A stretch of DNA of 39,946 nt from Octopus bimaculoides. Its lineage: Eukaryota. The position numbers and the translations under genes were made by a program. Below, piece by piece: positions 281 through 38,571 of the stretch. The notes under the pieces are model-generated. The model had not been told where the DNA came from. It saw only the letters and a list, made by a program, of their open reading frames with translations, and searched no databases. Where the stretch lies: the NCBI RefSeq assembly GCF_001194135.2, contig NC_068983.1:123198303-123238248 (forward strand). Direction: 5' to 3'. Within the stretch, counting starts at the first letter, position 1; each line of letters opens with the position of its first letter.

Positions 281-2080
281 AATATATATATATATATAAT
301 ATGCTTGTACATATACATATATGTGTGTGTGTGTTGGAGGGTGGTAATTCAATTTCTTTGGCTGTGCAACACCAGCCAACATGACATATATCCACATAAA
401 CATCCAGCTATTATCAATCTATCCAACAAAACCAATTTATCACTACATAGACTCAGTCAGTCAAGCCGCTGTTTAGTAGTAAAAACGGATGTGATTGCTC
501 GTATAAAAATCTGAGGTGGAAACACTGTTTTACTTGGACGTCATGAGTTGATCTATATACATATACATATATATATATGTATATATATATATATGTATGC
601 ATACACATATGTGTATGTCAACTTGTTGAAATTCAAAACCTACAAAAAATTTAAACAGTTAAGTATGTTTTCTACCGCTTGCAATTAATCATGTACTTAT
701 AAAACATACGTACGTATTCTTTTCTTATATCTTTTTACCTGTGTGTATTATCTTTTTTTTTTCACTTTTAATTTCAATAATATTTTAGTGTTTTCACCTC
801 CCAAACCTAATACCTATCGCACACGAGCCTATACGCTGTCGCTCGGTCTGCTAGAAATAGTAGCTAAATCTAGCTCAAATCACACCTTCCCATCTTTAAA
901 AAGGAATATTAAGTAATGTAGACCTCTGTATAATACTATATTTGAATGTAAGATGCAATGGTCATGGATAGAACGCCTGTAATCATACTCTGCTGGATCA
1001 GGGGTGATCTCTGACTAAACACTGTAATGCACTAAACCTTTGTGGTGATTCACAAGATGTTTTCTTTGACTCATACACACGTTAACGAACCTTTGTTATA
1101 AGAATATATATATTTAGTTTAGGATTTCGTTTGAAGCTTAATATGTGTTATATACACGCCGACGTATGTGTATACATTCAGGTATATTAGGGGTGTTGTG
1201 CTTTATAGGTGGCTAACTTCTATAAGAAATTGAGGGTACAACCAAATTTCAGTATTAAATTAGAACCGCTTTCTCTTCTGTATTGTCTGTGTGGCTATGG
1301 AAAGAATATAAACATCGTACGATCCTGCCGTTCCTAACTTTCAATTTCTGTGCACGATGTCTATGATAAAATCGGTGTAATTATGATTGTATATCGACCT
1401 TGAACATTTCTTTATTCTTTCACTTTCTCTAATTATTATCGTTCGTAATCCAATTCACTTACACAACTGATATGATTTTAGAAAGCATCAACATTACTAT
1501 AATTTATTTTTACTCCTACACTCCCTAAAATATCACACCTAGAATTTGAGATGACCCCATCAATAAATATGTGTTGTACTATTATACTTTAACACTATGA
1601 AGTTAGTCCGATATTTCACTTGTTTTAAGTTCAAATCTCGAATGGTGTCAACAATGTAATGTGATTCTGGTAGTTAAATTTATACGAAACCAGTTAACAA
1701 TAATAACTAACACCCGAATGTAACAGAATTTATCATATTAAATGCAACGACTAGTGACAAAATAATCCACATTTAATACTTATTATTTAATTAATCTTAC
1801 AACAAATTTAATGATCTCTGGAACCCTTTGACCCTCAGGAGGAATTTCGTGGACCCACAGGATTAATACACTGCTCACAGATGATTATTGAGAATATTTG
1901 TATGGAAATGAAAATAAAATTTAGGAGTGCTTATTTACTGGGTCTTTCATGAAGATATATTTTGGTGCTTCTCTGTCCACCAGAGTCTAGCTTGTCTGAA
2001 CATTTCAGAAGCTTTTAAATATTGCTTCAAATCTTTTATCACCGTTAATACATTTCGTCACTAATCATTAAATATTAAGG

Positions 2081-2331
2081 TCTTCTTGGGCCTGCCTCTT
2101 CCACAGGTTCCCTCAACTGCTAGGGTGTGGCACTTTTTCACACTGCTATCCTCATCCATTCTTGTCACATGTCCATACCAGTGCAATCATCTCTCTTGCA
2201 CATCACAACTGATGCTTCTTAGGTCTACCTTTTCTCTCAAGGTACTTACACTCTGTCTAGTATGCACACTGACATTACACATCCATCGGAGCATACTGGC
2301 TTCGTTTCTTGCGAGCTTACGCATGTCTTCA
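2081..2331 (-). mobile_element. RTE-clade LINE ORF2 C-terminal fragment
   Basis: Minus strand reads EDMRKLARNEASMLRWMCNVSVHTRQSVSTLREKVDLRSISCDVQER, then ...GTCGRGRP in another frame. Same family as 4619-4853 and 27870-28300. Confidence 0.85.
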
Positions 2332-2728: not shown

Positions 2729-2923
2729 ATGTCTTCAAGTTGCTTTCTTCGACCACTTCCTCTCTCCATGTTTCTACTCATCTCATTCTCCCTTGTATAT
2801 TTGGTCTTTGATGCATATTCAGTCTACAAGATTCCATTTCGTCTTCTTCCACGGAAAACTGAGCATGACCGAAATCGTGACTATTCTCGGTGGCCAACCT
2901 ACAAGCACATGAACTTTAATAAT
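2729..2923 (+). CDS. Exon 1 (first coding): MSSSCFLRPLPLSMFLLISFSLVYLVFDAYS...HMNFNN, with hydrophobic segment
   Basis: ATG in ccatcATG context, 65 open codons, donor gtaagt at 2924 (phase 0 matches exon 2). Upstream pyrimidine tract with AG at 2698-2699 or 2709-2710. No conserved motif anchors it, so it is less certain than the core exons. Confidence 0.75.
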
Positions 2924-5900
2924 GTAAGTCAAACTGAATTTATACATTGTTCAGGAAGTTAATGATTTTTCTCATTATCTATCTTTTTTACAGCTGTGCA
3001 AACTTTACTGTATCAATCTACTTTAGAAATGAACTAGCTTTGTAGGTAAACTATTGAATCCCTTGTTGTAAGTTGAAATCCAATACAGACATATTCTGTA
3101 TTGTCTTTTCATTCCAACTATGTTTATCTGGTATCTGACACTCTTGCAATGTTATTTTTATTAAATTTGTGTCCTAGCCAGGAGCAAGGTTTATGTCTCA
3201 TCTACTTCAAACTATGGTACTAGAGCTAAATACCAACACTTTGAGAATCCTCAAGAGTCAGTAAGTGATAATTTAAAATGAGGAATTTGTAGTTTTCACA
3301 AGTATGTAAATTTAAATATCACTATGTTATCTAGTTGATAAAGCCTGTGATAATCTGCAATTTCTAACTAGTATTGATACAAGTTTTGAATAGCATAAAA
3401 TGTGTTAAGATATCCCTCGGAGTCTTCTTACTACTAGCAGGAAGAGTCTAACATTTATTGTTGGACTCACAATCATGAGGTAGTGAGTTCAGTTCTTGGA
3501 CTGGACTGTGTGTTGTGTTCTTGAGCAAGACACTTTATTTCATGTTGCTCCAGTTCACTCAGCTGTAGAAATAAGTTGCAACATCACTGATACCAAGCTG
3601 TGTTGGCTTTTGCTTTTCCCTTGGATAACATCAGCGGCATGGAGAGAGGAAGCTGGTATGCATGGGCAACTGCTGGTCTTCCATAAACAAGCATGTAAGG
3701 ACTTGTGCCTTGAAGGGGAAATTTCTAGGTGCAGTCCCATGGTCACTCATGACCAAAGAGGGTTTTTACCCTTTATCCTAGTTATTTTCTCCAGGCCTAC
3801 TCTAATCAAGCAGATCTGTGATGAAAGGCATGACAAGCTATGACAATCCCATCTTTAAGAGTAAATTAGGCTGGATCAGTCTATTGTATCTTGTCCTGAT
3901 ATGACAATAGAGAGAATTGGATGATATTCCTTGCAAGTTGAACAACTAAATAGAGGCTCCATGAAATAAGGAGGTCATGCAGTTTTAGTTCAGTAATTGC
4001 TATCATGGCATCACCATTCATGAATAAGATAACTCATTCTTTATCAGTTACAAGGTTGTAACATTCCAAATCTTTGTCTTTGATAACATGCTTTCCAAGA
4101 CATTAGTTTTTCATTCATATCTATATCAGCATGGCAATCATTAACCTTATACCTCAAGAGATACTTTTGATTTCTTTTGACATTGTTCAATTCATTTATC
4201 CATAAGGCTCACCAGATTCAAATATCCTAAAGTTGACAACAGCTCATTAAGTTTCATCCCGTTTACTGTTGTCAGCAATACAGTCATCATCCATGGGTCA
4301 CATACATGACTCAATTCATGCAGGTAGACCATTTCTGTTTAGGGGTTTGTACTTCTAAAATCATATATAATTTATGTGAAAAGTTTTAGCTTTTCTTGTA
4401 AAATATGTATATGTGTTTTTGTATGTGGATATATATATATGATATCTGATATACATCATCATCATCATTATCGTTTAACGTCCGCTTTCCATGCTAGCAT
4501 GGGTTGGACAATTTGACTGAGGACTGGTGAACCAGGTGGCTACACCAGGCTCCAATCTGATTTGGCAGAGTTTCTACAGCTGGATGCCCTTCCTAACACC
4601 AACTACTCCGAGAGTGTATGCTCCGATGGATGTGTAATGTCAGTGTGCATACTCGACAGAGTGTAAGTACCTTGAGAGAAAAGATAGACCTAAGAAGCAT
4701 CAGTTGTGGTGTGCAAGAGAGACGATTGCGCTGGTATGGTCATGTGGCAAGAATGGATGAGGATAGCTGTGGGAAAAATGTCACACCTTAGCGGTTGAGG
4801 GAACCTGTGGAAGAGGTAGACCCAGGAAGACCTGGGATGAGGTTGTGAAGCACATACACACACATACAGAGAGCCAGAACACTTATTGTGAAGCAATCTA
4901 TTTAACTCTGCCAAGAGGCTGCCTATCATCATCTTCATCATCTATATAATATATATATACATGTGTGTCTTCATTATTTGATTTTTGTTAGATACTCTTA
5001 TATATTTTAGTCATGCATATCATTTTAACATGCTATGCTTTCCAGCACATTTTAAAATTTGTTTATATATATATATATATCATCATCATCATCATCATCA
5101 TCGTTTAACGTCCGCTTTCCATGCTAGCATGGGTTGGACGATTTGACTGAGGACTGGTGAAACCGGATGGCAACACCAGGCTCCAATCTAATTTGGCAGA
5201 GTTTCTACAGCTGGATGCCCTTCCTAACGCCAACCACTCAGAGAGTGTAGTGGGTGCTTTTACGTGTCACCCGCACGAAAACGGCCACGCTCGAAATGGT
5301 GTCTTTTATGTGCCACCTGCACAAGAGCCAGTCCAGGGGCACTGGCAACGATCTCNNNNNNNNNNNNNNNNNNNNNNNNNNNNNNNNNNNNNNNNNNNNN
5401 NNNNNNNNNNNNNNNNNNNNNNNNNNNNNNNNNNNNNNNNNNNNNNNNNNNNNNNNNNNNNNNNNNNNNNNNNNNNNNNNNNNNNNNNNNNNNNNNNNNN
5501 NNNNNNNNNNNNNNNNNNNNNNNNNNNNNNNNNNNNNNNNNNNNNNNNNNNNNNNNNNNNNNNNNNNNNNNNNNNNNNNNNNNNNNNNNNNNNNNNNNNN
5601 NNNNNNNNNNNNNNNNNNNNNNNNNNNNNNNNNNNNNNNNNNNNNNNNNNNNNNNNNNNNNNNNNNNNNNNNNNNNNNNNNNNNNNNNNNNNNNNNNNNN
5701 NNNNNNNNNNNNNNNNNNNNNNNNNNNNNNNNNNNNNNNNNNNNNNNNNNNNNNNNNNNNNNNNNNNNNNNNNNNNNNNNNNNNNNNNNNNNNNNNNNNN
5801 NNNNNNNNNNNNNNNNNNNNNNNNNNNNNNNNNNNNNNNNNNNNNNNNNNNNNNNNNNNNNNNNNNNNNNNNNNNNNNNNNNNNNNNNNNNNNNNNNNNN

Positions 5901-8467
5901 NNNNNNNNNNNNNNNNNNNNNNNNNNNNNNNNNNNNNNNNNNNNGCGCACCCACCCCCACTACTAACTTGGTCACCCAGATAGCGGAAGCTATCGACTAC
6001 CTCTAGTTTTTCTCCCTGGAATGAGATAGAAGTTGTTTCCTGTTTGTTTACAGTGTTTATTGCACCTGAACATCTGCCACATACAAAAACTAACTTCGTA
6101 GTTAATCTGCCTTTGATATTGCTGCACCTCTTATGTGTCCATAGCTTGCACCGGGTACATCTTATAGAGTTACTACCTACTCCTTTACTGCATACTGGAG
6201 TAGGTAGTAACTCTATATATATATATATATACATACACTCACATTCACTAATAAATGCACACACACACACATATAGTTTACATTTGTATGTTTCAGGAAT
6301 GGTTCAAGTTACACTGTTGGAACAATGAGAAAATTTCAATCTCTAATCTATATTCTGTCCTGAAGACACTAAAAATGTCTTCACTAAATGAGTGCAGGTA
6401 AGTTGATCTGTATATCTTCCTAGTGAACTTTTCTAAATGTTGACCTATCTGTCATTGCTTCTACTTGTGCTTCTTTATCTATTTCTTGCATCTTTTTTTT
6501 TTTTGTCTATTTGCCTATCTGTCTTTCTCTTCCTCTTTTTATCTCACTGTCTTTTTCAACGTATATTTAGCTATTTATCTGCATCTATCAGTGTATTCCC
6601 ACTGTCTGTATATTTGTGTATAGGATTAATGCATGTATGTACACATGCACATATATATACACATCAATCAGATGATTATATTTCACACCTGTGTAAAATT
6701 ACCATTTATTTACTATACATATATTTGTTCATTTTTACATATATATATGATGATGACACGCATGTATCTTAACATCCGTTTGCAGATGTATGGGGTTGGC
6801 TTACCTGTTCTAATAAATCTTCAGTAATCAAGATTCCTATGTACTGACCAAATTCACATAACATAGTTACACCAATATCTCTAAATAGATACAACATGCC
6901 TTGACTGTTATACTATACAAACAGCCGTATTGCATGATTCTCTTGTGTGTGGATTTTAGTGAATCTGCTTTGGTTTAATTACATTTCTATTTTTTAAATA
7001 CCTATTTCTCTCTCCATCAGAGAACTGTACGACAGAATCTCCAGTATATTCAGTGTAACTCAGAGGTCAGGTCAACTTGTGCTACCATCCCCATTTGTTG
7101 TGAAAGTGAGAAAATGGTTAGGTGGGAATCCATCATTATTTGCAGAAGCTAAATATCAGGTAAGTAAAATGTTTAAATGTCCAAGTGTATAGTGTGTATA
7201 TATATATATATATANNNNNNNNNNNNNNNNNNNNNNNNNNNNNNNNNNNNNNNNNNNNNNNNNNNNNNNNNNNNNNNNNNNNNNNNNNNNNNNNNNNNNN
7301 NNNNNNNNNNNNNNATAGTGTATATATACATATAGTATATATATATATATATATATAGTATGTTAAATATTCCAAGGAATTTCATTAACAAAGTATTGGT
7401 TTTGAAGTTTTCTTGCCAATATTTATCTCCATTAAGGCAGTGAGCTGACAGAATTGTTAGTGTGCTGAGCAAAATGCTTAGTAGTATTTTGTCTGTTTTT
7501 AAGTTCTGAGTTCAAATGCTGCCAAGGTTGACTTTACCTGTCATCGTTTTGGGGTTAGTAAAATAGATACCAGCTGAGTACTGGGCTCAATGAAATCAAC
7601 TTACCCCCTCACTTGAAATTACTGGCATTGTGCCAAAATTTAAAACCATTATTTATATCCATACACTGACATACATTTATATCAATATATGAGAAGGTGC
7701 TGAGAAGTTCATGGATTTGGGGAAAAGAAAATACAGGAGGATCTGGTTATTATGGTTTTAGTCAATATATTCCCCTCCCAGATTCACACACTTATTGCAG
7801 CAGTCCTTCAGGTGTTCTAAGCCCTGTAAAAGAACTCAGAAGGTTAGACTTTCAACCAGGCTTTTTGCAATACCCTTAAAGCCTGGAACTTTTTAACACC
7901 CGCGTACATGTGTGTGTGTGTTTCATAAGCTTCCTAATAGTTTCTATCTACCAAATTGCTCTTACATTGCTGTAGTAGAAGACACTTCCTTGCTGCACAT
8001 TAGGATCAAACCTGGAACCTTGTATTTGTGAATTGAACCAAGCAATCATGCCAGCATTCATTTACTCTCTGTTTAATACAATGATGCCTTCTGCTTGTCT
8101 TTTCTAGCACATCACTCTTGCCTTTAATGAATACACACGTGACAATACTATGTTTAATCCTCTTCGCTCAAAACGTCCTCTCCAGAAACCAAATCAACCA
8201 CAAAGAGAATAGTGAGTATCTATAGAGAATTGTTTTACTTGTCATCATCATCATTATTATGGTGGGGAGTTGGCTGAATCATTAGCATGTTGGACAAAAT
8301 GTTTAGCCACATTTCATCTGTCTATGTGTTCTGAGTTCAAATTCCACTGAGGACTTTACCTTTCACCCTTTCAGGGTTGTTAAAATAAGTACCAATTGAA
8401 CTCTGGGGTTAATGTAAACAATTTACCCTCTCCCCCTAAATTGCTGGCCTTGTGCCAAAATTTGTAA

Positions 8468-8501
<34 letters not shown>

Positions 8502-11500
8502 CATTATTATTATTATTATTACAGTGTAGAGCTAGCAGGATCATTAACATGCCGAGCAAAATGTTCAACAGCATTTTGTCTATACATTCTAAGTTCAAAT
8601 TCCACCAAGATTCAATTTTGCCTTTCATCCTTTTGAGATCAGACAAATAAGTACCAGTCAAGCACTGGGATCTATGTAAGTAACTAATCCCCTCTCCCAA
8701 AATTCCAGGCCTTGTGCCTGGCAGAATCATTAGCACACCAGGTAAAATGTTTAGCAGCATTTTGTTCATCTTTATGTTCAGAATTCAAGTGCCATTGGGG
8801 TGGACTTTGCCTTTCATCCCCTTTTGGGGTTGATAAAGTAAGTACCAGTTGAGTACTTGGGTTGATGTAATTGACTTACTCCTCCCCTGAAATTGTTGAC
8901 CTTGTGCCAAAATTTGAAACCATTATTACTATTATTATTATTTCCATTATTATTAAGGTTGTGAGCCGTGGAGGCGCAATGGCCCAGTGGTTAGGGCAGC
9001 GGACTCATGGCCATAGGATCACGGTTTCGATTCCCAGACCGGGCATTGTGAGTGTTTATTGAACGAAAACACCCAAAGCTCCACGAGGCTCCGGCAGGGG
9101 ATGGTGGTGAACCCTGCTGTACTCTTTCACCACAACTTTCTCTCACTCTTATTTCCTGTTTCTGTTGTGCCTGTAATTCAAAGGGTCAGCCTTGTCACAC
9201 TGTGTCATGCTGAATATCCCCGAGAACTACGTTAAGGGTACACATGTCTGTGGAGTGCTCAGCCACTTGCACGTTAATTTCACGAGCAGGCTGTTCCGTT
9301 GATCGGATCAACTGGAACCCTCGACGTCATAAGCGACGGAGTGCCAACAAAGGTTGTGAGCTAGTAGAATCATTAGTCATTATCATCATCACTTTTCCAT
9401 GTTTGCATGGATCAGATGGAATTTATTAAGGTAGATTTTCTATAGCCAGATACCCTTCCTATTGCCAACCCTCAACTGTTTCCAAACAAGGTAATATTTC
9501 CCCGTTGCCAGACATGTTTTCACAGAATATTGGAAATGAATGACAGTAAAAGTACCTTCCAGTATTTTCTTCTTGCATGCTACATTCTGAGTTCAAATCC
9601 TGACAAATAAACTTGGCTTTACATCCATTTGGCGGGGTTAGTCTAATTAACCCCTCCCATCAAAAATTGCTAGTTTTGTGCTTAAATTAGAAACTTTTAT
9701 TATTGTTATTTGTTTTGTTTTTGTTTTTTTGTTATTGTTATGATTAGGAAAATCATAAGAATATTGGATTTCTTCTGCCGCTTTACATTAAAATCCTGCT
9801 GTGGTCAACTTTAATTTTCATCTTTCTGGGGTTGATGAAATGAAGTACTAGTCAAATGCTGGAGTCCATATCAACTAAAGTCTCTTCCTAAAAAACTGTT
9901 GACCTTATATCTAAATCAGAAGCAATTATTATTATTAATGAGAGATGATACAATGTCATTAAGGATTTAATTACATTGAGTTTTAATTCTGTATGGAGTC
10001 TGGTTTGCCTTTTATTCAGCTGGGGGGAATTAAATCAATTACACTGCTCGCTCCATTGACATTTTGAGAGTTTGTTAAAGTGTCAGAAACAGTAAGACTA
10101 AATATGTCTTGCAATATTTTGTTAGGTCTCTTTATGTTTGATTTCAATTTACATTAAAAAAAAAAAATTATTATTTTTTATTTCTTTTGTTTTTTTTTTC
10201 CCCCCTGCAGTGTGGAAAAATTATCTGAGAAGACTGGTCAAAACTGTGACTTTTGTAAATATTCAAAGTAAGAAAATGTCTTCAAAATTATTTTCAGATA
10301 TTTTTGTTTTGTTTTTGTAGTTTTTTTGTTGTTTATTTGTTTTGTTGTTTTGTTATTTTTGTTCTTTTCATTTTTTTTTCTTTATATATGTCTGGTGTTG
10401 TGGAAATGGTTGTATCAGTAATGCATCAAACCAAATGCTTTATCTCTCAGCACCTTCAGTTTAAAATCTACCATGGATAATGAATTAAGGACTAGGAAAT
10501 ATTGAAGTACCAACATGGCTATAGCCTTTGGGCTGAAATGCATCAAAGAACAAAAGAATATATATATATGTGTTTGCATGTATGTAATGTATATATGTAT
10601 CTATGTATAAAATGCATATATGTATGTAATGTATATATGCATGTGATGTATGTATGAATGCATATATACATACACACATGCATACATATATACACACACT
10701 CACTCACCCACTCACTCACTCACTCACACATTCACTCACTCAGTGATACATTCTACAAAATGTGCCTTGTACCTTATCAAGAGAGATGTGAAAATTTTCA
10801 TTGCTGAGTAAGACATCTACCACATGGTTGTTCTTTAGTCTCATTTCAGCCCTGACTAAGCAGAACTATGATCAAAGATATTCCAACCTTGACCATTCCA
10901 TCTTTTTTTCGTATATCTGGGACTACATAGTCCAATATGCCCAGCCCATTTAAAAATTGTAGGGTATGATTTGAGGGTGATCTAGCATCTACTACTAGCA
11001 GGTTGCGTGAGTATGTAGTCTCTGTCATTGTCTCATATATATATATATATATACTAGCAGTATAGCCCGGCGCTGCTCGGGATTAAGTGCTTTATTTCAA
11101 ACCAAAATAAGTAACATCGACATCAGATTTGAGCGAAATCCGTTGAAATTGGTTTGGCTGAAAATGGTTTGCTGGCAATTTGATTGGGAAATCCCATAAG
11201 GAATCAGTTTATTGGTTATTTTCACTCATTGACTCTTTTTTTAAATGTTGCATTAGAGATCTGCATAGGAGAAGGTTGATCTGAAGGTTTGCATTGGGGA
11301 TCTGGATTGGAGTAACTTAGGAAAGCTTACCAACAACCTTAACCAAAAAATAAGGGGCCTGTCCCTTCTAGGTTAACTCTAACCCTAACCCCTAACNNNN
11401 NNNNNNNNNNNNNNNNNNNNNNNNNNNNNNNNNNNNNNNNNNNNNNNNNNNNNNNNNNNNNNNNNNNNNNNNNNNNNNNNNNNNNNNNNNNNNNNNNNNN

Positions 11501-13256: not shown

Positions 13257-14652
13257 TCTCTCTTTTCTCTCTTTCCCATCATAATATAGTTACTACTAAG
13301 TTTTTCATTCCTTCTCTTAAACGGTTTCCTCACTGTGCAGGGTAGTACATATGACAAAAAATTAAAGATTTAGCTTGGCCATGTGAGTAAGCGGCCTTTA
13401 TCAAATTTCAGCACAATATCTGGGGGGTGTTTGACCTGAAAGCAATGCATTTGTTTTCCATGTGTGATAACCCAGTTACAAGCACTATATTGTTTCTATG
13501 GCTCTGCCCTTTTTCCTATCAAATACCTCCCTTCTTCTACTCATTCTATTTCTTCCTTTCCTTCCTTCTCTTCCTTTAGTCCTCTTACAAATTATCACTT
13601 CCCTTTCCTCTTTATCTCTCTTCCACTTATCTTATACTGATTCTTATTGTCTCTCTTCACCCCCACCTTCCATGTCTGTACTATTCCTTCAGTGTTCTGC
13701 TTTGTTATAACCAGAAATGACTAACAAAAGTAGCATTCATTTTTTAAAGTCATTCAATTTTTTTTCAACCGATCTATGGACCGATTGAGTAAACCAATCA
13801 ATTAGCGAACCTATAATGACTACTGGAAACAGCTGTAAGTGAAATTTACTGTAATAAAGAAAAATATTTATTATTTATACCTTGTCTTGTGTGTCACTTT
13901 GTGTAAAAACCAGTACAACTGGAGCACAGCCATAGATTTACAATATAGAATGGTGATGCCACAAGAATACATGAAGTTCTTTACTAATAGGCGCAGGAGT
14001 GGCTGTGTGGTAAGTAGCTTGCTTACCAACCACATGGTTCCGGGTTCATTCCCACTGCGTGGCACCTTGGGCAAGTGTCTTCTACTATAGCCTCGGGCCG
14101 ACCAAGGCCTTGTGAATGGATTTGGTAGACAGAAACTGAAAGAAGCCTGTTGCATATATATATATATATATATGCGAGTAAAAATAAATACAAAAAAAGG
14201 TGGATTTTTTTGTATGATTGTGTATAGAGGAATATATTATTTTGCTTAAAAGAGTTCCAACACTGTCTGTTTTTTATGTTTTATTTATATTCCTGCAGAA
14301 CTAATGTGGGGTATAGAATATGGAATATACAATATNNNNNNNNNNNNNNNNNNNNNNNNNNNNNNNNNNNNNNNNNNNNNNNNNNNNNNNNNNNNNNNNN
14401 NNNNNNNNNNNNNNNNNNNNNNNNNNNNNNNNNNNNNNNNNNNNNNNNNNNNNNNNNNNNNNNNNNNNNNNNNNNNNNNNNNNNNNNNNNNNNNNNNNNN
14501 NNNNNNNNNNNNNNNNNNNNNNNNNNNNNNNNNNNNNNNNNNNNNNNNNNNNNNNNNNNNNNNNNNNNNNNNNNNNNNNNNNNNNNNNNNNNNNNNNNNN
14601 NNNNNNNNNNNNNNNNNNNNNNNNNNNNNNNNNNNNNNNNNNNNNNNNNNNN

Positions 14653-17600: not shown

Positions 17601-19203
17601 TTATAAATATAAATTCTAAAGCTCAAATTTTATGGTTTATAAAACCATAATTTAAACCTATTTAAACTTGTCACATTTTTGCTCATCATCTTCAGACCTA
17701 CAATGAAATTAAGTACCATACCAAGAAGCACTACTTAGATCTGGTAGAGAAATCTCCTTGTTTACTTCTTTAACAGTCAAATCCAGTGTTATTTGTTTAA
17801 TCATTACTATTACTAACAGTAGAATCTGTCATCAAATCCTATCCACACAACCAGTTAAGTTCTTTGTAGTTTTGCAATTTACTGTCTTAACTGAATATAT
17901 CAACATTATCTAACACTATTAATATAATGAATGCAACAATGTTAATCATTTTTTACTTTACTTTCTCTTCTAGTTTTACTGCTGAAGATTTGTTTGGACG
18001 TATTGAATCAAAACACTCATTCACAGCTGCAAATGCCTTTAAATATGATGCATGGCATGCTTTAGTTATTACAAGGAAACATCATCCATTGAAATGGTCT
18101 GAAGATATATTTTTAGACTGTATGAAAGTAGCTAGAGAATGGTGAGTTTACTGTTTTCCTTGTAAATACATTCCTTCAAAGGTAAGTTAACCATCAACCA
18201 AAATTGTTATTTGTAGTTTGAATTTAAAATCCAGTGTAGCACACAACTTCATCAAATGCTTTAACACTTTGAAGTTTGATAAGAATCACTTAGTTTATAT
18301 GATGATGATGATGGACTCTCCTGTTGAAGACAGCATATGGGCATTCAGCTTTTGCGTAACAACCTGCACAAATGATCTGCTTATACTGATCAAATGTATG
18401 TACTGTACATTAGCTCACTTTCTCCATTAAATCAATGTTGTCTGAACAGGCACACAGTGTACCACATGTCAGGTGTCGAAGTGATTGCAGAGCAACATGA
18501 ATCGAAGTGTTTTTGCTCAACAACACAATGCACCACCCAGTCTAGGAATTGAAACCACAATCTTGCGATTATGAGTGCAACACCTTAATCACTTCGCCAT
18601 GCATCCTCAGAACATGATGATGATAATGATAATGGTCTCAAATTTTGCCACAAGGCCCACAATTTTAGGGGGAGGGATAAATCAATTACATTGATCCCAG
18701 TGTACAAATGGTACTTCTTTTATTGATCTTGATAGAATGAAAGGCAAAGTCAACCTCTGCAGGATTTGAACTTGAAACTTAAAGATGAACGAAATGCTGC
18801 TATGCATTTTACCCAGGATTCTGCCAGCTCTCTTACCTTAATAATAATGATTTCAAATTTTGGCACCGAACCAGCAGTTATTCTCATGTTATTTTGTGAT
18901 CACTTCGACACCTGACATGTGGTACACTGTGCACCTGCTCAGGCAACAGTGATTTGATGGAGGGAGTGAACTAATGAACAGCACATACATTTGATCATCA
19001 TAAACAAATCATTTGTGCAGGTTGTTTGGCAAAAGCCGAACACTTATACGTTGTCTTCGGTGGTAGAGTCCATCATATAAACATATAGTTTTTATTGAAG
19101 TGGATTGCACTGTGTTGACAAGCTTGCTCTTAAAATTCCTGTGTTTTAAATCAAAACTTGTTAGTTACTATAGTGACAACACTATCTATTTATCTTTCAC
19201 ATG

Positions 19204-19279
<76 letters not shown>

Positions 19280-22200
19280 CTATCTCTCTCTCTCAACAAC
19301 TTTTTCTTCTCACCTTCTAAAAATACATTGTGGCATATGTTTCGATACCTCCCCTTCTTTCCCTCCTTCTAATGCATATTATGACAGACAGACAGACAGT
19401 CAGATCCACTTCTATTTTATAATAGATTATAACTTAGGTATTATTAGGGAAAAGAGCACAATCTTTCTGTGTATTTCCACCTCATCTATTAAAGACTTTC
19501 ATGATATGGTCTTCTTGCAACTATCACTTCCAACTCTCCCTGCTTTTATGTATCCTATAACATATATATATATATATATATATATATCTGTCATTTCTTA
19601 CTTATATGTGAGTATGTATGTGTATGTGGCTGTGTGCATATAATGAGTATACAGATATATATGTGCTTGTTTGTATGTAAGATACATGTATATGTGAATG
19701 TACATATATATGCTTACATGTATGTATAAAATACATATGAGCTATGTTTATACACTTACTCTCACCATTGCCAATTTTCCATGGTGTTGCTCACAGTTTC
19801 CTTTTCTCTCCTTTTCCCCTAGCTGAGGCTACTCGGTGCCTAGGTAGGACCCCACCTCTTCTTTTTCCTTGTCTACCTCTTCATCACCCTCTCCCTTTCA
19901 CATATTTGTACCCAGTGATTTGTGGGATTAGGTTTTGTATGATTACAATGAACTAAAATCTCATTCTTCTTCTTGTATCTCAGGAGGACCTGCTAGGAAT
20001 CTTTCTACAGTCTCATCCTCATATTTCTGATTATATAATCAATAGCAACATAGCTATTTTTGAATGATTTTAACACTGTAAATAATGGAGCTTTGGTCTA
20101 TAAAGAATTGAAATATATTAGTTTTCTGCATTAATACAAAACCACAAATATTTTATATTAGGTCAATTGAATCAACTTCATGCATGTGTTGCATTTATTT
20201 TACTGAACCCAGTTATAAATTTAGAATGTAAGAAGACAAAACTAATTACTGTAAGATGTTTAACTTGACAAACTACTGTCTCTATCATACCTGAGTTAGC
20301 ACAGTTTTATGTAATCTGGGTAGCACAGTACAGCTAAGGATGTATTATGTGTTTTTAGGTTTAGAATATCACTCCCTAACAGGAGTTAACAATGGGGTGG
20401 ATGCTGGTGATGATGAGTTTCTAACTCATTGGGTACTACTGAAAATGTAATCTTCATATGGTGTATCTGTTGGATCCCATTTGCTTTTTAACTATACTTA
20501 CAGAAATAGTTAAACATAATACTACCAGCTAATAAAATAACTGTTAGTTTTACTGTTCTTGTTATTTAGAATGTTGAGTGCTTCCACACTATATTACCTA
20601 TTTGCTGTTAGTAGGACTGGTTTTAAACACAGTGCAATACTAATGACAGGATATAAGCCTTTCAGCTGCTGGCCCAACACCATATTAATTTTATGGTTCA
20701 AAACAGTTAAGCCAGTAGAAAATAGAAGTGAAGTTCTAACAGAAAACTGAAATTGCTACAGTTTTGTTCAAGGTGAAAATGCTGAAAAAACATTGTATCA
20801 GAAGATAAACTGTAGTACATTATTTCTCTCCCTTTTTTTCATGGATTTGTTCTTTTGCTTTCTCTCATGAGTTTTCTATATTATATATTGCTTATTTATC
20901 ACTGAACACTATCATTACAGGTATGAAAAAGTACATTCAGTAGATATCCGCTACAAATTACCAACGTTATTGTGGGATCTGCTGCCCCATGCCAGTGCCA
21001 GCCAAGTTCATCCACATATGCATATCAATCTACTTCCAGACAGATATTATGGTAAATATATTTAAATGAGAAATTATATGGTCATAAAGTCAACTGTATC
21101 TTCTTTATTTATGTTCATTTTTCATTCTGATATTTCAGCATAAGTACCCAACTGCATCTCCCTACCACAAATCACATATTCACCATTATACTGTCTACAC
21201 CAACAAAAGTTGATTATTTCATCAATGACAGAAACTCATAGACCCTGTAATCAACTTCATTTCCTTTTGCATTAGGTGGATAAACAATAATTCTTCTCAT
21301 CAGATTATTTATCTGTTGCTTGTTATATACCAAAACATCCCAGCAACTACTCACCAGGAAAGAGATAAACTGGGAGGATGTAGAATTAAATAAAATACCT
21401 ACAGCAGATTTTGATTACTGATTCATGAACTGATGGTCCATTACTTAGTCTGTTCAACCATTTCATTTACACAAAGCCACTTAGAATTGAAATTAAGATA
21501 TTTTAAACAATTGATGTGTAAATAGATAGGCAGAGGTCACTTTCTTAAGGAGTGGAGACACATGGCTTAGTGATTAGGGTATTGGTCTCATGATCATAAG
21601 ATCATGGTTTTGATTCCTGGACTGGGCGATGCATTGTGTTCTTGATCAAAACACTTCATTTCATGTTGCTCCAGTCTACTCAGCTAATAAAACAGAATAA
21701 TCCTGTGGTGGACTTGTGTCCCATCTAGGGAGGAATATATATACCAGAGAAACCAGGAAACTAGCCCTTTGCTGCTTATGAAGTAATGTGGACAAACCAC
21801 TTTGCTAAGAACTTAATAACAGAAAAAGCAGAGTAGACTTGTGATATAAACTTAGGGGGCTTTTTGAAAAAGCAAAAACTGCCAATATGATAACTGTGAG
21901 AACAGCATTTGACCACATTCTCTATACTAACCACAGATGCTGTGTTATTTGCAAAAAGGTTAAAATATAGGTCATATCAAACCTAGATATGTGCATAGTT
22001 TATAACTACTAACTACCCAGCTTAATATTATTTCAACATCACACTAGAACAAGGCATGGTATATTTGGAACAATGGAATTAGTCGTTTGAGAACTCTCTG
22101 CATGCCATAGATTTGCTAGCAACCAGAACCGTTCTTTACTGCAATATCATTTCAATGTCTCTCCTATCATTTCCTTACAGGGGTTATAGAAAACTGGCGT

Positions 22201-25200
22201 ATTGCAGCTGAACACTTCAGTAATGATTATCCAGAAAGAAACTATTTCTCAGAAGTACTCTACATCCATTCAATGTTAGACTTGGCTTTCCATTATAAAA
22301 CTGCCGCTGCATTTGCTAATATTGTGAGTATCTTTGCATTTCTCTTCTTTTTTATTCTTTTTTAATTTCTCCTTTTTGTGTGTTTTTCTTTTCTTGTTTT
22401 TAATATCAGTGCAATTCAGATCCGTTCAGTTGTCAATTATGTACTCAAAGAAATGCAGTCCATGTTGCTGAAACAACAAATTGTAGAAGTGAATTAATCT
22501 ATATCAAATGACAATCGAAGAGCTGGAACAAATACCACAAGACATTTTATCTCTACCAATTCTGTCAGTCCACTGTTATAATAATAATTTCTGACTTCAA
22601 AATAAGAATGAAGCATATAGTTGATTATGACTACTACTTATATGAACACCCTTGAGAGATGAAGACAAAGTCAATTTCATTGAGAGTTGAACTGACTATA
22701 GACAGATGATGCTAGATATTGTAAGATCCAGAAATGATGAACCAATGAGGAAGTCTTTATGTGGTCATTCAACCTGCTAGAAATATCAGTCAGATAACTT
22801 AAACCATAACTTAATATCTTAAGAAAGAAAAGTCAAACTATATAATATAGTTCTAGATACACTGTGTAGCAAAAAGTAATTATAGCTGCTACACCATTGG
22901 TCATAAGTTTGCTTGATCTTAACTGACCTTTGGTAAACAATTTCATCAGCAATATTTCAATAACATAATGTCATAACAGTAACAAAAATATTTTTACTCT
23001 GGAGTTGTTGATGATATTAAGAGTATTTACTGACTGAAAGAAGAAAACCTGCACAACAAAGACTAGCAGTTTTCTCTGTTGCTATGTGGACAAAAATATA
23101 TAAGTGACAAAATGCTGAAAAACCTGTCCAATCCATACCAGTATGGGGAAAAAATAGATGTGAAATGATGAGGATGTAATAACATGATATTGTTTCACAT
23201 AATATTTCTTCTTGAAATTTTGCAAAGTAAGCAATAACATCTCAACTACTGAAAGCTGTTTGTTCCTTATAGGGACCCAGGGAACCTACACAACCAACCT
23301 CTGCATAATAGTTTGTTACATTATAGTCAAAGCCCAGACTATAGCATTTCATGTCTGAGGAGCCAATTACATGAGATACTTTTCTTTGACAATCAAGTGT
23401 GTCAACATTTATTATTATTATTATTAGGTATTAGTGTTAGTCTATAATAATTTAATGATTATTTTTTTCCAGCTGATATTGACAAATTCAAATCACAACA
23501 GAATACACTCTAATATAGCTGTGACAATAACTGCTTCCATAGCACCAAGCTCTATGCTGAGTTAGAAAATCCCTGCACTGTGTTTGTATCTAACATTAAC
23601 TAAGTTTATCATTTGATATATTTTTTAATTCCATCATCACCATTTAACATTGACTTACATACTGGAATGGGTTAGATAGCTGGATAGTTTAACTGGATCC
23701 AATTAGTAATGGGACTGCATTGTGCTCCGGTGTCTTCTTTAGCGTAGTTTCTATGACTAGATGCCCTTCCTAATGTCAGCTGCTTTCTTTTTACATGGTC
23801 CTTACAATCAAAGGAAGATAAAAGAGAGATGGTACAATGATTTGGACTGGGTGATGAGAGAGAAATGGGATTTATAGATATGCAAATGTGGTAGTAGGGA
23901 GAGTAGCAAAACAGAAGCTATTAGAGGAAATAGTATGGAAGAGACAGGAGAAGGGATTTGTGTCAGAGATTAGTGAAAAAGTGGAGACAGAATGGAAAGA
24001 TGATTAAGTGGGTTGTGTCAAGGTTGTCCAGGAGCATCCTACATTAGAAGTTTGAGTATGAATGAATGGTACATGGGAAAGCTGAACAAGAAAGGTAGAA
24101 GTAGATGAGGGTGGCAAGAGATGCAAAGAATCATTGAAAGGGAAGTATGAGAGTTGTGGGTGTAGATGAGAGAAGCTTGTTGAGGTAGTTGAGAAGCTAT
24201 AAGATGACAATGAGGGAATAATGGGGTAGTCCAACCAATGCCAGCATGGAAAAACGGATGGGAAATGATGATGAAGATGTTGATGAGCGTACAGTGGGCG
24301 CAGTAAGAACAATCAAGAAAAAAATAGTGTGGCAGGCACCTTAAAGGTAAGGGAGAAGAAGAGAGTGTGAATCCAGAGAAAGTATCCTATGTGAGGAGGC
24401 TGTGGAAAGGGGACAGCAAAAGAAGTGGGTAGAGGGAGCACTAAAAAGTTATATATTTCCTGTTTTGATTGCAAAGCTAAAATATGATAATAGGTGCAAA
24501 ATGTCAATTGTCCTCCAACTATTCAATTAATTGTCCCTGTGCTGTACTAAGATTCGCTTGAGTGAACTCGTTACAATTACACTACAATATCAGCAGGTTA
24601 AGTAATCAAATATTTCAACCTCATTAATAAAAAAAAAAAATAAGTACTTAATTTTGAAAAATGGTTTATAATGCTCACAGAACATTATCTTTTAATAGAG
24701 AACTAAAAAAGTTGCTGTGAATATTAGGCCTCGTTATCTCTGAACACTCCTCCCCCCCCCCCCATCCACATATATATCAAAACTACATCACAAAGACTTT
24801 AAATCAGAGAAATACTTCAGCTATTAGTTACTAAGACTCTACGGAGCTCAAAGAAGTCCCACATTGGAATACTGCTAACATAACATAGATGCTGCTGCAC
24901 ATCAAGGAGTGAAACCTAAAGAAGGCCAGTCATCTGATTTAACATGTTTCACCCACCAATTTGCTACAACCAGGGGCTCACAGAAGTATGGTTTCTTTTT
25001 TTTTTGCGGGGGGGGGGGCTTCTTCTACAACTACTATAATGGTTTCTGCTGTTTGCATACTCCTATCATGCAGGTTGATCTGATCCACTCATCTGTCCTC
25101 CTCTTGTCACCCTTATTATGTAACATCTCCCAGAACCTTCATTGAATACATCATCATTCATTCCAATCCAGGACTACAACCCTCTAGAACTCCATCCTTG

Positions 25201-26167
25201 CCCACATTCTTCTATAGATGTTAAGGTTAAACATCAACTGAATCAGTCTCTGAAAGGCCTGCAATGGTCATAGGCACTACCTCTCTTCTAACTTATTAAA
25301 AGAAAGCAAAAACACAAGATCATATATATATATACTAAGAGTAGTTTATATTTTGTGACATAGAAACTTTTCTCAAGGGCGTTAGTGGCATAAATGAAAG
25401 GATATAGCTTTTATTCTGTATCATTTGTTAAATACAACTGAAAGAAATTCTGTTTAATGTCCTAGGTTATTTTATTTTGTTTTTCATTTGTCTTATTTAA
25501 ATTTTCATTTAGACGCCAAAGAAAGATAATGAAATTGTTGTTCTTGGTGAAGCCCCCAACGATGATTTTTTTAAACTGTTGTACTATGTACTAAGAGGTA
25601 AACAGCTTTATTTTATTAAATGTCTGTTTGAAATGAGCTATTAATAAGATTATTATTTTTTTGGACTATTCATCTCATTGTTAGAGATGAAACACTTTTC
25701 TGTATATATATCTACATTGTTTTTGTTGATTTGATCTCTTATTTCTATTTGGTGCCTTATTTTTGGCAGTCTACATAGTACCAGACTGCTTTATTTCATT
25801 TGTTCTTTTTTTTAACCCTAATTTATCAGTCAAATCGTCCAACCCATGCTAGGCATGGAAAGCAGACGTTAAACAATGATGATGATATATATATATATAT
25901 CTGTAAAAATATGTGACACTTATTCGGTAGCAATGATAAAACTCTGAGTTTTGGATGCCAGGGTGGGAGCCCACGCCAACATCTCTTCAGTTATCCAGCC
26001 ATTGAAAATTCCTGTGAAAAATGATGTTGGCGTGGGCTCCCACCCCGGCATCCGAAACTCAGAGTTTTATCATGGCTACCGAATAAGTATCACATATTTT
26101 TACAGATAAATTCCTTTATTTACATAATATCAAGGCCCCTTTCTTTCTTTTGTTGTCCTTCCTATCA

Positions 26168-32119: not shown

Positions 32120-35100
32120 GGTGGCCCAAGAGTAGCTTAACCTGTTGAAAGCCACTGACCAGATTTGTGGGTGGTGTAAGGTCCCCTCCCGACCCAGAGT
32201 AACGTGGTGGTGGAACAAGGAGGTAGACAGGGCTATTAGACAAAAGAAACAGGCTTGGAAGGACTGGAAGAATGGTGGTAGCAGGGAATTGTACCAATGT
32301 GCCAGAAGGGAGGCTAGGCGACAGGTTTATTTAGCCAGAGGGGAAGCAGATAAGAAAAGATTTACCANNNNNNNNNNNNNNNNNNNNNNNNNNNNNNNNN
32401 NNNNNNNNNNNNNNNNNNNNNNNNNNNNNNNNNNNNNNNNNNNNNNNNNNNNNNNNNNNNNNNNNNNNNNNNNNNNNNNNNNNNNNNNNNNNNNNNNNNN
32501 NNNNNNNNNNNNNNNNNNNNNNNNNNNNNNNNNNNNNNNNNNNNNNNNNNNNNNNNNNNNNNNNNNNNNNNNNNNNNNNNNNNNNNNNNNNNNNNNNNNN
32601 NNNNNNNNNNNNNNNNNNNNNNNNNNNNNNNNNNNNNNNNNNNNNNNNNNNNNNNNNNNNNNNNNNNNNNNNNNNNNNNNNNNNNNNNNNNNNNNNNNNN
32701 NNNNNNNNNNNNNNNNNNNNNNNNNNNNNNNNNNNNNNNNNNNNNNNNNNNNNNNNNNNNNNNNNNNNNNNNNNNNNNNNNNNNNNNNNNNNNNNNNNNN
32801 NNNNNNNNNNNNNNNNNNNNNNNNNNNNNNNNNNNNNNNNNNNNNNNNNNNNNNNNNNNNNNNNNNNNNNNNNNNNNNNNNNNNNNNNNNNNNNNNNNNN
32901 NNNNNNNNNNNNNNNNNNNNNNNNNNNNNNNNNNNNNNNNNNNNNNNNNNNNNNNNNNNNNNNNNNNNNNNNNNNNNNNNNNNNNNNNNNNNNNNNNNNN
33001 NNNNNNNNNNNNNNNNNNNNNNNNNNNNNNNNNNNNNNNNNNNNNNNNNNNNNNNNNNNNNNNNNNNNNNNNNNNNNNNNNNNNNNNNNNNNNNNNNNNN
33101 NNNNNNNNNNNNNNNNNNNNNNNNNNNNNNNNNNNNNNNNNNNNNNNNNNNNNNNNNNNNNNNNNNNNNNNNNNNNNNNNNNNNNNNNNNNNNNNNNNNN
33201 NNNNNNNNNNNNNNNNNNNNNNNNNNNNNNNNNNNNNNNNNNNNNNNNNNNNNNNNNNNNNNNNNNNNNNNNNNNNNNNNNNNNNNNNNNNNNNNNNNNN
33301 NNNNNNNNNNNNNNNNNNNNNNNNNNNNNNNNNNNNNNNNNNNNNNACGATCGTATCCGATTAACTAAAGACTTGTTTTGTTTATGCCTTTCCCTCCGTT
33401 TTTTTGTTCTATGTGTGCCATAAATATTGCCATCCGTTTAGAGAAAAATTTGTAGTTTAGAATCAGTAGTTCTTTGACTGCTATTTCTAAATTTTCAGTA
33501 TGTTGGAGAAGCAACTCAATGCTAATCCCTGTATATTTATGATGATAAATGGTTTTACCGATAAAGGTTTTTTCATACTGAACTACTTGGCAAAATTGTT
33601 AATTATTAATTCTATTATTAATTGACGATTCCCTGCCCTTATTCTTGTGTATATATATATATATTGTAGCTTTGTGTCTATGTTTGTCCCCCACTTCCAC
33701 TTAATAACCGGTGTTGGTGTGTTTACATTCACTAACTTAGTAGTTCAGTAAAAGAGGTCAATAAAAAATAGTACCATGCATAAAAAAGAAAGAATTGGTA
33801 TCAATTTGTTCAATTAAAATTCTTCAAAGCATAACCCATTGTGGTCGCAGTCTGATGACTGAAAAAGATAAAAGACCCACTAAATTTCTTAGTAAAACTT
33901 TAAGCTAAGGGAGATGTTATGACATAGCTATAAACGTCTGGTGTAAAATGGTATTACACAAATAAATAGTTGGTTGTGGTTATCTAAAAATGACCTATCG
34001 CAGAAATATATGTTGACACAGAACGCACTCCATACATAGGTACAATACTCAGTATTCAATGTTCAACTTCTGACTGTTAAACCAACACACATCGAACTAA
34101 CATGGTTAACCAACATGTTCGAAGTAACACCATCAACTACACCCTGACAGTTCACTCTTCTTATTTATTGTAATTGGTTAGTCCACCTTCAGTCACATGG
34201 GGGTGTTCAGGTTTCTCCCATAACAGGAGGTAACTTTTGTTCACCTATCTCAGTAATACTATGGTACTGAAACCTCTCACGGTCGCTTTAACTGCTAGAA
34301 ATGCTTTTAAATCCGATCCTAATGCTGGATATTCAAGAAGCAAATGAAGGGCAGGTTTTCAATCCCGGGATCATCCTGGTTCCAAGAAGGTATAATATGT
34401 CTGTCTAGAGCAAATGTAGACTGAGGTACAGAGACAGTTACACTTTTATTAATATAGATACACACATACATATGCATGTATACACACACATATACACATA
34501 TATGTTTATTTCACTTCCAAATCACACCTGGCATCTTTAAAAAACATGACACATTAGATAAGAAGATTATTACAACTGGAATGTTTCTACTTTTAGATAT
34601 GCTTCAAGTAACAAAATAGGTTCATTTCATACTCAGTATATTGTGATTAAGAATTTCCTTCCTACTTTCAAACCCTTCAACTGAGCATTGTATTTTCTCT
34701 TTCCAGCTTATATTGATGACATGGAAAAACTTTGTTTTAGTATGGCTATTGCATTTCCAAGTATTGTAAGTATCACATTTACCATTTAAACTGAATCTGT
34801 ATGTTTATTTTGGGAATCCATTTTGTTATTTTACAGATTTCCATATTATTCCAAGCATAACATTCATGGCCTATCTCAGCTCATTTGTCTTTTAAGGCAT
34901 AGGATCATTTTGCTTTTAAAAACAAAACTTGCCTCTTTTGAAGGTTTTGCCAGCTCAAGATGATTTTCTAATTTCTTACACTTTGGTTTATTATGGTTGT
35001 CTTCACTAATTGTATTTATGCAGAGTTGAATGCTTTTTGGTATCTTCAAAGCTTTTGCAGAGTGAGAATGTTATATGTATCAATGGTGGAAAAAATTCTT

Positions 35101-36325: not shown

Positions 36326-38227
36326 TCAGGCTTCTTTCAGTTTCCATCTACCAAATCCACTCACAAGGTTTTGGTCAGCCTGAGGCTAGAGTAGAAGACA
36401 CTTGCCCAAGCTGCCATGCAGTGGGACTAAACCCAAAACCATGTAGTTGGGAAGCAAGCTTCTTACTACACAGACACATTGCACCTAAAATATATTTTTA
36501 TGATTTTTATATCGGTGGTGAGAGCAATGAACATTGGAGGTTATCATGGTGGTGTTAAATCAATAGTCAAATTTATTGCAGCTGCTCATTAAAACTGGTT
36601 TTGTTGATTTTTGGTATTTTAATGTCTTGTCTGCAACTATATTTTAATTTATTCCCTTTTCATTTTTTCCTTTTTCTTTTTAGTTGAAGGAGGATGTCAC
36701 AGGTCGCTTACCTGTCTATGCACGGCTGATATCTCGAGGTACAGTTGGTGAAGTACGCTCTGATATCAGCTCCCTGGAGCTATTTGCGGTAAGCTAAAGA
36801 ATAGATTTCATCCTTCATTGTATTGTTTGTTTTCTTAATTTGTCTGAGCTTTTTGATGTTCTTTGCATTGAATATGGTAACACTAACTTATTTTAATTTT
36901 TAATTCTGATGACATTGATTAAATTAAAAGCTTTTATTTTAGTTTGTTGGGTTTATCCCTTCATGGCATTCTATATCTCATTATGTCAGTGCTGGCTGGT
37001 TTTCTTTGGTATTAATCATCATCGTCGTTTAACGTCCGTTTTCCATGCTAGCATGGGTTGGACGATTTGACTGAGGACTGGTGAAACCAGATGGCTACAC
37101 CAGGCTCCAATCTGATTTGGCAGAGTTTCTACAGCTGGATGCCCTTCCTAACGCCAACCACTCAGAGAGTGTAGTGGGTGCTTTTACATGTCACCCGCAC
37201 GAAGGCCAGTCAGGCGGTACTGGCAACGGCCATGCTCAAGATGGTGTATTTTATGTGCCACCTGCACAAGAGCCAGTCCAGAGGCACTGGCAAGTGTTTG
37301 AAAAACAAATCTGCTCCTGGTTTGGCTGCCAGTCTCTTACAGATGACATTTCTGCACTTAATACTGTATGCCAATGAATCAGTTATCACTTTTACAGTGA
37401 TGTTGCTCTATAATACTTAACTAATGATACCATCCCAGTGAGAGAACCTCTACATGGCTGCTTAGAATTAGCAGCTAATCTCCCTACAAAACACACTCTG
37501 TTGTCTTTATAATGGAAGGTTATTTTGCTGAGTTAGTAGTGCAAAATTTTCAAAATGTATCATATTCTGTTAGAAAGTAACCTAAAATGAAGATTAAATT
37601 ATATCATATCATCATCAACATTGTTGTCATCATTTAACGTCCATGTTTCATACTGGTTTGGGTTGGACTGTTTGACAGGATCCTATGAATTGAAGGACTG
37701 CGCTGTGACATGGTTTCTATGGTTGGATGCCCTTCCTGATGCCAACCACTTTACAGTATTTACTGAGTGCTTTATTCGTGCCACCAGCAGTAGTGGAGTT
37801 GCATTGCAATATGCAAAACTACAAACTCTGAGGGGGATGGTTTATGCTAGCAAATGAGGGATGCCCTGGTACAAAAATTAAGAAATTTGCAGAAAGGAAT
37901 TAGACATTTTCCTCTCCCCAATACTAGATGAACCAACAGTCCAACATGAGGTACAGACGAGGGCAGTGGAATCAAACTCAGTTATATATCAAATATACCA
38001 ACAGTTGGGAAAATGGCACATACAGGAGTAGTGATGTGAAACACCCAAACTGAGAAAGTTAGGAAGACCATGGAGGTGCTCCAGCATGACCACAGCTGCA
38101 TGGCTGAAATGAAAGAATATATATATATACAAATGATATATATATATTATATATATATAAATAATATATATATATATGTAAATAATATATATATTATATA
38201 ATGTATAATATATATATATATATATAT

Positions 38228-38265: not shown

Positions 38266-38571
38266 TCAAGGTGAATATGGTACTTAAGTTTAAGCACCAC
38301 AATTAATTATGGTATTATCCAAACAATTCCAAAATAAGGTGATTCAAATCAAAATAAGCAACAAGGATATTCAAGGTTAATGCAGTAATGTGTATTGAAG
38401 TAATTTGTTTTCGTATTTCACATTGTTTACTGTTGGAGACGTCCTGTACCCATATATGTATGTGTATATATATCATCATCATCATCATCATCGTTTAACA
38501 TCCGCTTTCCATGCTAGCATGGGTTGGACGATTTGACTGAGGACTGGTGAAACTGGATGGCAACACCAGGC

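Follow-up and report, generated by a model that had tools for sequence, protein, structure and literature searches.

Can a HIT-family catalytic domain work inside the secretory pathway? The question is raised by LOC106875681 of Octopus bimaculoides, a gene covered by the 39,946-nt window analyzed here (the whole stretch presented, whose numbering is used throughout). An initial annotation, made from the sequence alone, proposed that an N-terminal anchor or signal encoded at 2729-2830 would put a HIT-family catalytic domain in the secretory lumen or outside the cell. We found that coding sequence opens at 2729-2923, exon 1 of a gene with 12 exons, and that the 456-residue product joins a widely conserved hydrophobic N-terminal segment to a double-HIT domain of the GalT branch. 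The best explanation is a type II-anchored GalT-branch HIT enzyme with its catalytic domain in the lumen or at the cell surface, to which we assign a probability of about 0.6. Since the gene already has an annotation, it offers no new sequence; what is new for GalT-branch HIT proteins is the anchored layout, in a family that has neither a name nor a characterized member.

Gene structure and the first exon

All 12 exons have canonical AG/GT boundaries and consistent phases (Table 1), and the spliced product is identical to RefSeq XP_052822485, isoform X2 of LOC106875681 ("uncharacterized protein"). Most exons were placed by splice-site and phase logic, and exon 2 and the last three exons were fixed by tblastn of relatives of exon 6 against the window. 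M92, N199-F-T, and N345-I-T-P, the landmarks named in the initial annotation, are all reproduced by this model. Exon 1 reads MSSSCFLRPLPLSMFLLISFSLVYLVFDAYSVYKIPFRLLPRKTEHDRNRDYSRWPTYKHMNFNN and is followed directly by a GTAAGT donor; its portion 2729-2830 translates as MSSSCFLRPLPLSMFLLISFSLVYLVFDAYSVYKIP.

Two Logan contigs speak for the authenticity of exon 1. One, 1010 nt of genomic sequence from a cuttlefish-like cephalopod, matches the window over exon 1 and nowhere else, at 76% nucleotide identity. Its differences from octopus over 47 codons fall 5/5/25 by codon position, residues 15-36 are identical in the protein with third positions near saturation, and a GTAAGT donor stands at the homologous position, after which the contig continues into the intron; upstream of M1, conservation is lost. 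Such a pattern indicates that exon 1 is under purifying selection. The other contig (1680 nt) carries P0154, an uninterrupted decapodiform open reading frame (ORF) of 458 residues in which the exon-1 N-terminus runs on through exon 2 and the entire catalytic domain; a member of its cluster is present on 91 Logan contigs. With the N-terminus directly fused to exon 2 in P0154, exon 1 is spliced to exon 2 in that lineage, which settles the first doubt that the initial annotation had raised about its own proposal.

A probable untranslated exon upstream (600-709, donor GT at 710) would, once spliced to the acceptor at 2699/2700, bring an in-frame TAA (700-702) upstream of M1, which would make M1 (2729) the first ATG available for initiation. 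This exon is probably homologous to the "coding" extension of isoform X1 of Octopus sinensis. RefSeq isoform X1 of O. bimaculoides has 13 extra basic N-terminal residues (MKILYYKLKRTSI); its "MKI" start exon was searched for within the window and not found. Isoform X3 lacks the 57-nt exon 5 with its CDFC motif. Skipping of exon 5 occurs in O. sinensis X2 as well and keeps the frame (…QPQREY/FTAEDL…; the skipping isoforms are P0255 and P0254); the shortened product may be noncatalytic, regulatory, or splicing noise.

One alternative second exon was discarded. This 83-nt candidate at 3178-3260 (+) gave way to the 101-nt exon at 6297-6397 that homologue-guided tblastn identified. The decoy has a good acceptor, a GTAAGT donor, an open frame, and phase behavior like that of the true exon 2, and it has no homologue support.

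A conserved N-terminal hydrophobic segment

The N-terminal arrangement first read from 2729-2830, with R8, a hydrophobic stretch over residues 10-27, and then D-A-Y-S/V, is seen in the translation. The Kyte-Doolittle maximum over 19 residues (KD19) is 2.06 at residue 9 (residues 9-27) and never exceeds 1.6 elsewhere in the 456 residues. AlphaFold2 (AF2) predicts a helix at the positions equivalent to residues 10-34.

Homologues were collected with HMMER, exon 6 being the sole query of a full search that retrieved 222 relatives; an earlier search with a partial exon concatenation had found only the exon-1 ORF P0001. Members containing both N-P-x-R-x-x-R and S-x-x-H-x-H-x-[HQ] fall into 81 sequences with a long N-terminus and 65 short ones. 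Counting as an anchor any segment with KD19 of at least 1.6 ahead of the catalytic domain, 77 of the 81 long-N-terminus homologues have one. It starts between residues 1 and 68, and its uncharged stretch has a median of 21 residues (range 19-30; 18-19 in octopus). The short forms, about 350 residues in prokaryotes and including Planctomycetia, Dehalococcoidia, and one archaeon, nowhere exceed a KD19 of 1.85 and are devoid of a transmembrane (TM)-like segment.

Anchored forms are taxonomically widespread. They occur in bivalves (Mytilus) and gastropods, in the annelids Owenia and Capitella, in the octocoral Dendronephthya, and among deuterostomes in echinoderms, hemichordates, and amphioxus (Branchiostoma). 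Further examples come from a priapulid (Priapulus), rotifers, an acanthocephalan, a bryozoan, and arthropods (a centipede, odonates, and a springtail), as well as from the unicellular Salpingoeca, Capsaspora, Creolimax, Amoebidium, and Trypanosoma conorhini. No vertebrate appeared among the named homologue hits of this nonexhaustive search. The hydrophobic N-terminus is thus conserved in the mollusc, annelid, and cnidarian homologues that the initial annotation had proposed to inspect, and the downstream start without such a segment that it had considered is not what the homologues show. Its central observation, a hydrophobic N-terminus and a HIT domain on one protein, is borne out by both the gene model and P0154.

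Two members of the family deserve separate mention. The T. conorhini protein (P0051, 451 residues) has the N-terminal TM segment and lacks the stem cysteine pair described below; the presence of an anchor in a kinetoplastid implies that the anchored form is older than Holozoa or was horizontally transferred. In the Haliotis rubra protein XP_046582314 (P0002, 565 residues), the region of exons 6-7 is internally duplicated (FTAEHETHRLESS…HPHVHGF occurs twice), most likely an artifact of assembly or annotation.

Fold and motifs of the catalytic domain

Profile searches with the spliced protein were of little help. Pfam gave no match to a GalT family, the best relevant hit being the generic HIT model PF01230 at 14 bits (cutoff, 21.5), and neither the NCBIfam models nor a phmmer search of PDB produced matches above threshold. 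One family member of prokaryotic length has a weak match to DUF4931_N. The family profile finds weak but collinear matches in PDB entries 1z84, 1hxq, and 4i5t: RAKRP…CxxC aligns with FSPARAKRP…CPFC of 1z84, where the octopus CDFC meets CPFC, and AGASqvHpHaq aligns with AGASMSHSHSQ.

Structure prediction was more informative. The O. sinensis orthologue P0152, 98% identical to the octopus window protein, was modeled with AF2 (pLDDT, 91.7; pTM, 0.86) and compared by Foldseek. The model contains two HIT-like half-barrels in one chain. Its best match is Arabidopsis ADP-glucose phosphorylase (2h39/1z84; E value, 2e-11; target-normalized TM-score [TMt], 0.70; about 335 columns), followed by Escherichia coli and human GALT, then Apa2, and then DUF4931. 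Hits to 2h39, 1z84, 1hxp, and 5in3 together span E values of 2e-11 to 1e-8, TMt of 0.62-0.71, and about 335-355 columns. On the basis of profile collinearity, the AF2 model, and the Foldseek ranking, we assign the octopus protein to the GalT-branch double-HIT enzymes, in line with the HIT-family domain first proposed. Identity as GALT itself does not hold: the protein belongs to a separate unnamed family, and no GalT model of Pfam or NCBIfam detects it. An older 297-residue O. bimaculoides model that starts at M160 (P0257) carries the UniRef name "Galactose-1-phosphate uridylyltransferase."

In a 67-sequence alignment, R165, P169, T201, N219, S282, H285, and H287 (window protein numbering) are invariant, and R165, R168, and P169 of FNPLRSKRP are invariant or nearly so. 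Of the putative zinc ligands, the CxxC pair C192/C195 is present in all 46 long-N-terminus homologues of the alignment and H227 in 45 of them, with H285 invariant. The family consensus of the HIT motif is HPHxQ; octopus has H285-P-H287-M-H289. At position 289, the 21 short, mostly prokaryotic sequences all have Gln, and the long ones are divided between Gln (18) and His (28); cephalopods have His (octopus codon, 21021-23) where the GalT branch has Gln. Class I GalTs use the first His of this motif as a zinc ligand and the second as the nucleophile, and their Gln stabilizes the intermediate (bioRxiv 10.64898/2026.09.13.751320). By analogy, the equivalents in the octopus protein would be H285 for zinc binding, H287 as nucleophile, and H289 at the Gln position.

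Membrane orientation and competing readings

The product of LOC106875681 would be a single-pass membrane protein with a basic tail of 9 (isoform X2) or 22 (isoform X1) residues, a hydrophobic helix of 18-19 residues acting as an uncleaved signal anchor, a stem of about 70 residues with two family-conserved cysteines, and then the catalytic double-HIT domain of the GalT branch. Insertion of the anchor is most likely N-in/C-out and would leave the catalytic domain in the lumen of the endoplasmic reticulum or Golgi apparatus or on the cell surface. Flanking charges across the family favor this type II layout, which the initial annotation had suggested: among the 77 anchored homologues, the N-terminal flank is the more positive in 64, the flanks are equal in 8, and the C-terminal flank is the more positive in 5 (means, +3.3 N-terminal versus +1.0 C-terminal), and by the positive-inside rule N-in/C-out is therefore predicted. 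The stem part encoded by exon 2 is limited to anchored forms and has no counterpart in prokaryotic homologues. Its cysteines, C72 (in 45 of 46 long-N-terminus homologues) and C98 (in 41 of 46), are conserved in a manner consistent with a lumenal disulfide. Conservation of the anchor extends from trypanosomes and choanoflagellates through corals, worms, and molluscs to amphioxus; the catalytic domain therefore probably resides within the secretory pathway, and a lumenal or extracellular location is likely from the sequence data.

Several observations weigh against this explanation. Isoform X2 has flanks of equal charge (+2/+2), so that the argument for orientation rests on isoform X1 (+4/+2) and on the relatives. 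N-glycosylation sequons are not enriched (1.9 observed versus 2.7 expected per protein), and the junction sequons N199-F-T and N345-I-T offered in the initial annotation, although present in octopus, are unconserved in homologues; being both underrepresented and unconserved, sequons were rejected as an indicator of topology in either direction. With respect to function, identity to solved GalT-branch enzymes is just 11-14%, and the substrate therefore cannot be read from homology. Moreover, His in place of Gln at position 289 may mean an altered chemistry, closer to the HxHxH of Hint and Fhit.

A cleavable signal peptide, cut after A29-Y-S31 to release a soluble lumenal or secreted enzyme, would explain the layout of isoform X2, in which a 9-residue n-region with R8 precedes the hydrophobic core and small residues occupy -3 and -1; many relatives likewise have small or polar residues right behind the hydrophobic stretch. 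The suggestion of an A-x-S signal-peptidase site is correct insofar as A29 and S31 obey the -3/-1 rule, but cleavage itself is doubtful. The h-region is long (18-19 residues in octopus, with a median of 21 in relatives), 30-68 residues precede it in many relatives, isoform X1 adds its 13-residue basic extension, a single continuous AF2 helix spans the cleavage site, and A-x-S is kept in cephalopods only. For these reasons an uncleaved signal anchor appears to fit better, and we regard release by signal peptidase as improbable.

Somewhat less improbable, yet still unlikely, is an anchor of the opposite orientation (N-out/C-in, P450-type or outer-mitochondrial), with a catalytic domain that uses cytosolic nucleotides at the membrane surface. 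The equal flank charges and very short, easily translocated N-terminal tail of X2 would suit it, as would the sequon statistics and the precedent of the known characterized GalT-branch enzymes, all of them soluble and cytosolic or organellar. It is opposed by the charge bias of the family, by the long basic N-terminal tails that adjoin the helix, and by a stem cysteine pair that is conserved in anchored forms only. That exon 1 is part of a different transcript or an artifact of annotation, the protein starting downstream as in the model from M160, has a negligible chance of being correct. The older O. bimaculoides models P0257 and P0258 (278 residues) do lack the N-terminus, but the phase-consistent 12-exon chain is the current RefSeq model, P0154 links exon 1 to the remainder without interruption, and nearly all long-N-terminus homologues have the anchor, which already contradicts a downstream start.

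Relation to known enzymes and possible chemistry

The closest structural relative, Arabidopsis At5g18200 (ADP-glucose phosphorylase; 1Z84, 2H39), is a class I GalT-like enzyme that shares with the octopus protein the two HIT half-barrels in one chain and the collinear motifs R-x-K/A-R-P, CxxC, and AGAS-x-H-x-H-x-Q/H. The two differ in that identity is only 12-14%, the plant enzyme is soluble, with neither TM segment nor stem, and octopus has H289 for Gln and about 100 unmatched N-terminal residues that make up the anchor and the Cys-containing stem. GALT (IPR001937; 1HXQ, 5IN3) has the same fold (TMt, 0.62-0.65), the HPH core, and the positions of the putative zinc ligands, including the first His of the motif; it is cytosolic and soluble, however, and the octopus protein is not its orthologue. 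A tblastn search of the window with a human GALT sequence, taken as a lead rather than a test, returned only noise. Ap4A phosphorylase Apa1/Apa2 (4I5T) and the DUF4931 protein BCE0241 (4QVU) share the GalT-branch HIT fold and HxHxQ (Foldseek E value, ~1e-6), but their structural overlap is lower (query-normalized TM-score, 0.26-0.33) and neither is membrane anchored.

The layout has precedents outside the HIT fold. FICD, ENPP1/3, and Golgi glycosyltransferases combine a short basic cytosolic tail, a single signal anchor, a stem, and a catalytic domain acting on nucleotides or nucleotide sugars, and their catalytic folds are unrelated to HIT. No HIT-fold member is known among type II-anchored lumenal or ecto nucleotide enzymes, and the known characterized HIT and GalT-branch enzymes are all soluble proteins of the cytosol, nucleus, or organelles. 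Searches of the literature for HIT enzymes that are anchored in membranes, lumenal, or secreted, and for the names of the locus, retrieved nothing relevant.

If the enzyme works as GalT, ADP-glucose phosphorylase, and Ap4A phosphorylase do, His287 would attack the alpha-phosphate of a nucleotide sugar or dinucleotide to form a covalent nucleoside monophosphate (NMP)-enzyme intermediate, from which the NMP would be handed to phosphate or a sugar-1-phosphate; C192, C195, H227, and H285 would form a structural zinc site. Prokaryotic homologues bear on the substrate. They were located at L002 8001-9104, L004 8001-9098, L007 7001-8140, and L005 4712-5854 and on the P0248 contig, and none has a TM segment. 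Purine/NAD genes adjoin them on three contigs; in one context the homologue stands between purF-purM-purH and nicotinamidase/QRPTase genes, and in another it follows immediately after purB-purA-IMPDH. On one contig the homologue heads a trehalose cluster of otsB, a nucleoside diphosphate (NDP)-sugar pyrophosphorylase (NTP-transferase), PGM, and otsA, and on another a GH15 gene lies two genes downstream. From these neighborhoods and the structural match, our best guess is that NMP would be transferred from an NDP-hexose or dinucleotide to phosphate or a sugar phosphate, so that a nucleotide sugar or dinucleotide is the presumed substrate of the octopus enzyme.

Features of the window

The window is AT-rich DNA with eight N-runs amounting to 3746 nt, all within introns, and no exon of the final model is interrupted. 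A repeated intronic element at 4343-4513, 4982-5143, 36897-37067, and 38399-38533 (+), whose translation ends …HHHHHRLTSAFHASMGWTI, is probably a short interspersed element (SINE) or other dispersed repeat; related fragments lie near 26963-27112, 31200-31316, and 37598-37672. Retroelement-like ORF fragments (…RLRWYGHV.RMDEDS…) occur at 2061-2186 (-) and 4618-4791 (+). An Rfam scan of the window gave no matches.

Table 1. Coordinates of the gene and related features in the window
Feature	Position	Strand	Remarks
Probable 5' untranslated region (UTR) exon, 5' limit undefined	600..709	+	Matches the extended N-terminus of O. sinensis isoform X1 (P0250)
Exon 1, residues 1-65	2729..2923	+	M1, short tail, hydrophobic anchor, and first part of stem
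Hydrophobic segment L10-F27 (predicted signal anchor)	2756..2809	+	KD19 2.06; AF2 helix; equivalents in homologues
A29-Y-S31/V32, putative signal-peptidase site	2813..2824	+	Within predicted helix; kept only within cephalopods
Exon 2, residues 66-98 + 2 nt	6297..6397	+	Stem; Cys72 (6315-6317), Cys98 (6393-6395), M92; homologue tblastn
Exon 3, residues 99-145	7021..7159	+	Similarity to prokaryotic homologues starts here
Exon 4, residues 146-179	8108..8211	+	FNPLRSKRP motif; R165, R168, P169 invariant or nearly
Exon 5, residues 180-198	10211..10267	+	C192-D-F-C195 (10245-10256), putative Zn ligands
Exon 6, residues 199-254	17974..18141	+	N199-F-T junction sequon, invariant N219, H227
Exon 7, residues 255-298	20921..21051	+	HIT motif S282-Q-V-H285-P-H287-M-H289, His codons 21009-21023
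Exon 8, residues 299-346	22181..22323	+	Ends with N345-I
Exon 9, residues 347-374	25513..25597	+	TPKKDNE, second half-barrel
Exon 10, residues 375-394	34707..34765	+	
Exon 11, residues 395-429	36684..36788	+	R408, R412, D421, E426 nearly invariant
Exon 12, residues 430-456 + TAA stop	39047..39130	+	
N-runs	5356-5944, 7215-7314, 11397-11684, 12290-12919, 14336-14652, 28665-28722, 29506-30290, 32368-33346		Intronic

Implications

Beyond octopus, the data may point to an ancient family in eukaryotes, with the octopus protein as its founding example, of GalT-branch HIT enzymes that carry a type II anchor and act in the secretory pathway or at the cell surface on nucleotide sugars or dinucleoside polyphosphates, by phosphorolysis or transfer. 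We put this forward tentatively, at a little below even odds, for a range embracing kinetoplastids, choanoflagellates, filastereans, ichthyosporeans, and most invertebrate phyla. From kinetoplastids to amphioxus, its members are known only as "uncharacterized protein" and lie below the thresholds of Pfam and NCBIfam. Being broad, unmodeled in these databases, and uncharacterized, the family is an accessible target for enzymology; the predicted catalytic residue H287 and the putative zinc site C192/C195/H227/H285 can be mutated, and the purine/NAD and trehalose/NDP-glucose neighborhoods of the prokaryotic homologues suggest the substrates to start with.

In the current view, the lumen contains just glycosyltransferases, NDPases, and pyrophosphatases. 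If the catalytic domain is lumenal, covalent-His nucleotidyl-transfer chemistry would be placed where nucleotide sugars are consumed, and analogy with the GalT branch would then suggest lumenal nucleotide-sugar turnover. The octopus protein would then be the first HIT enzyme with a lumenal or ecto location, and its reaction would add a step not yet described to the metabolism of nucleotide sugars in the lumen or of nucleotides outside the cell.
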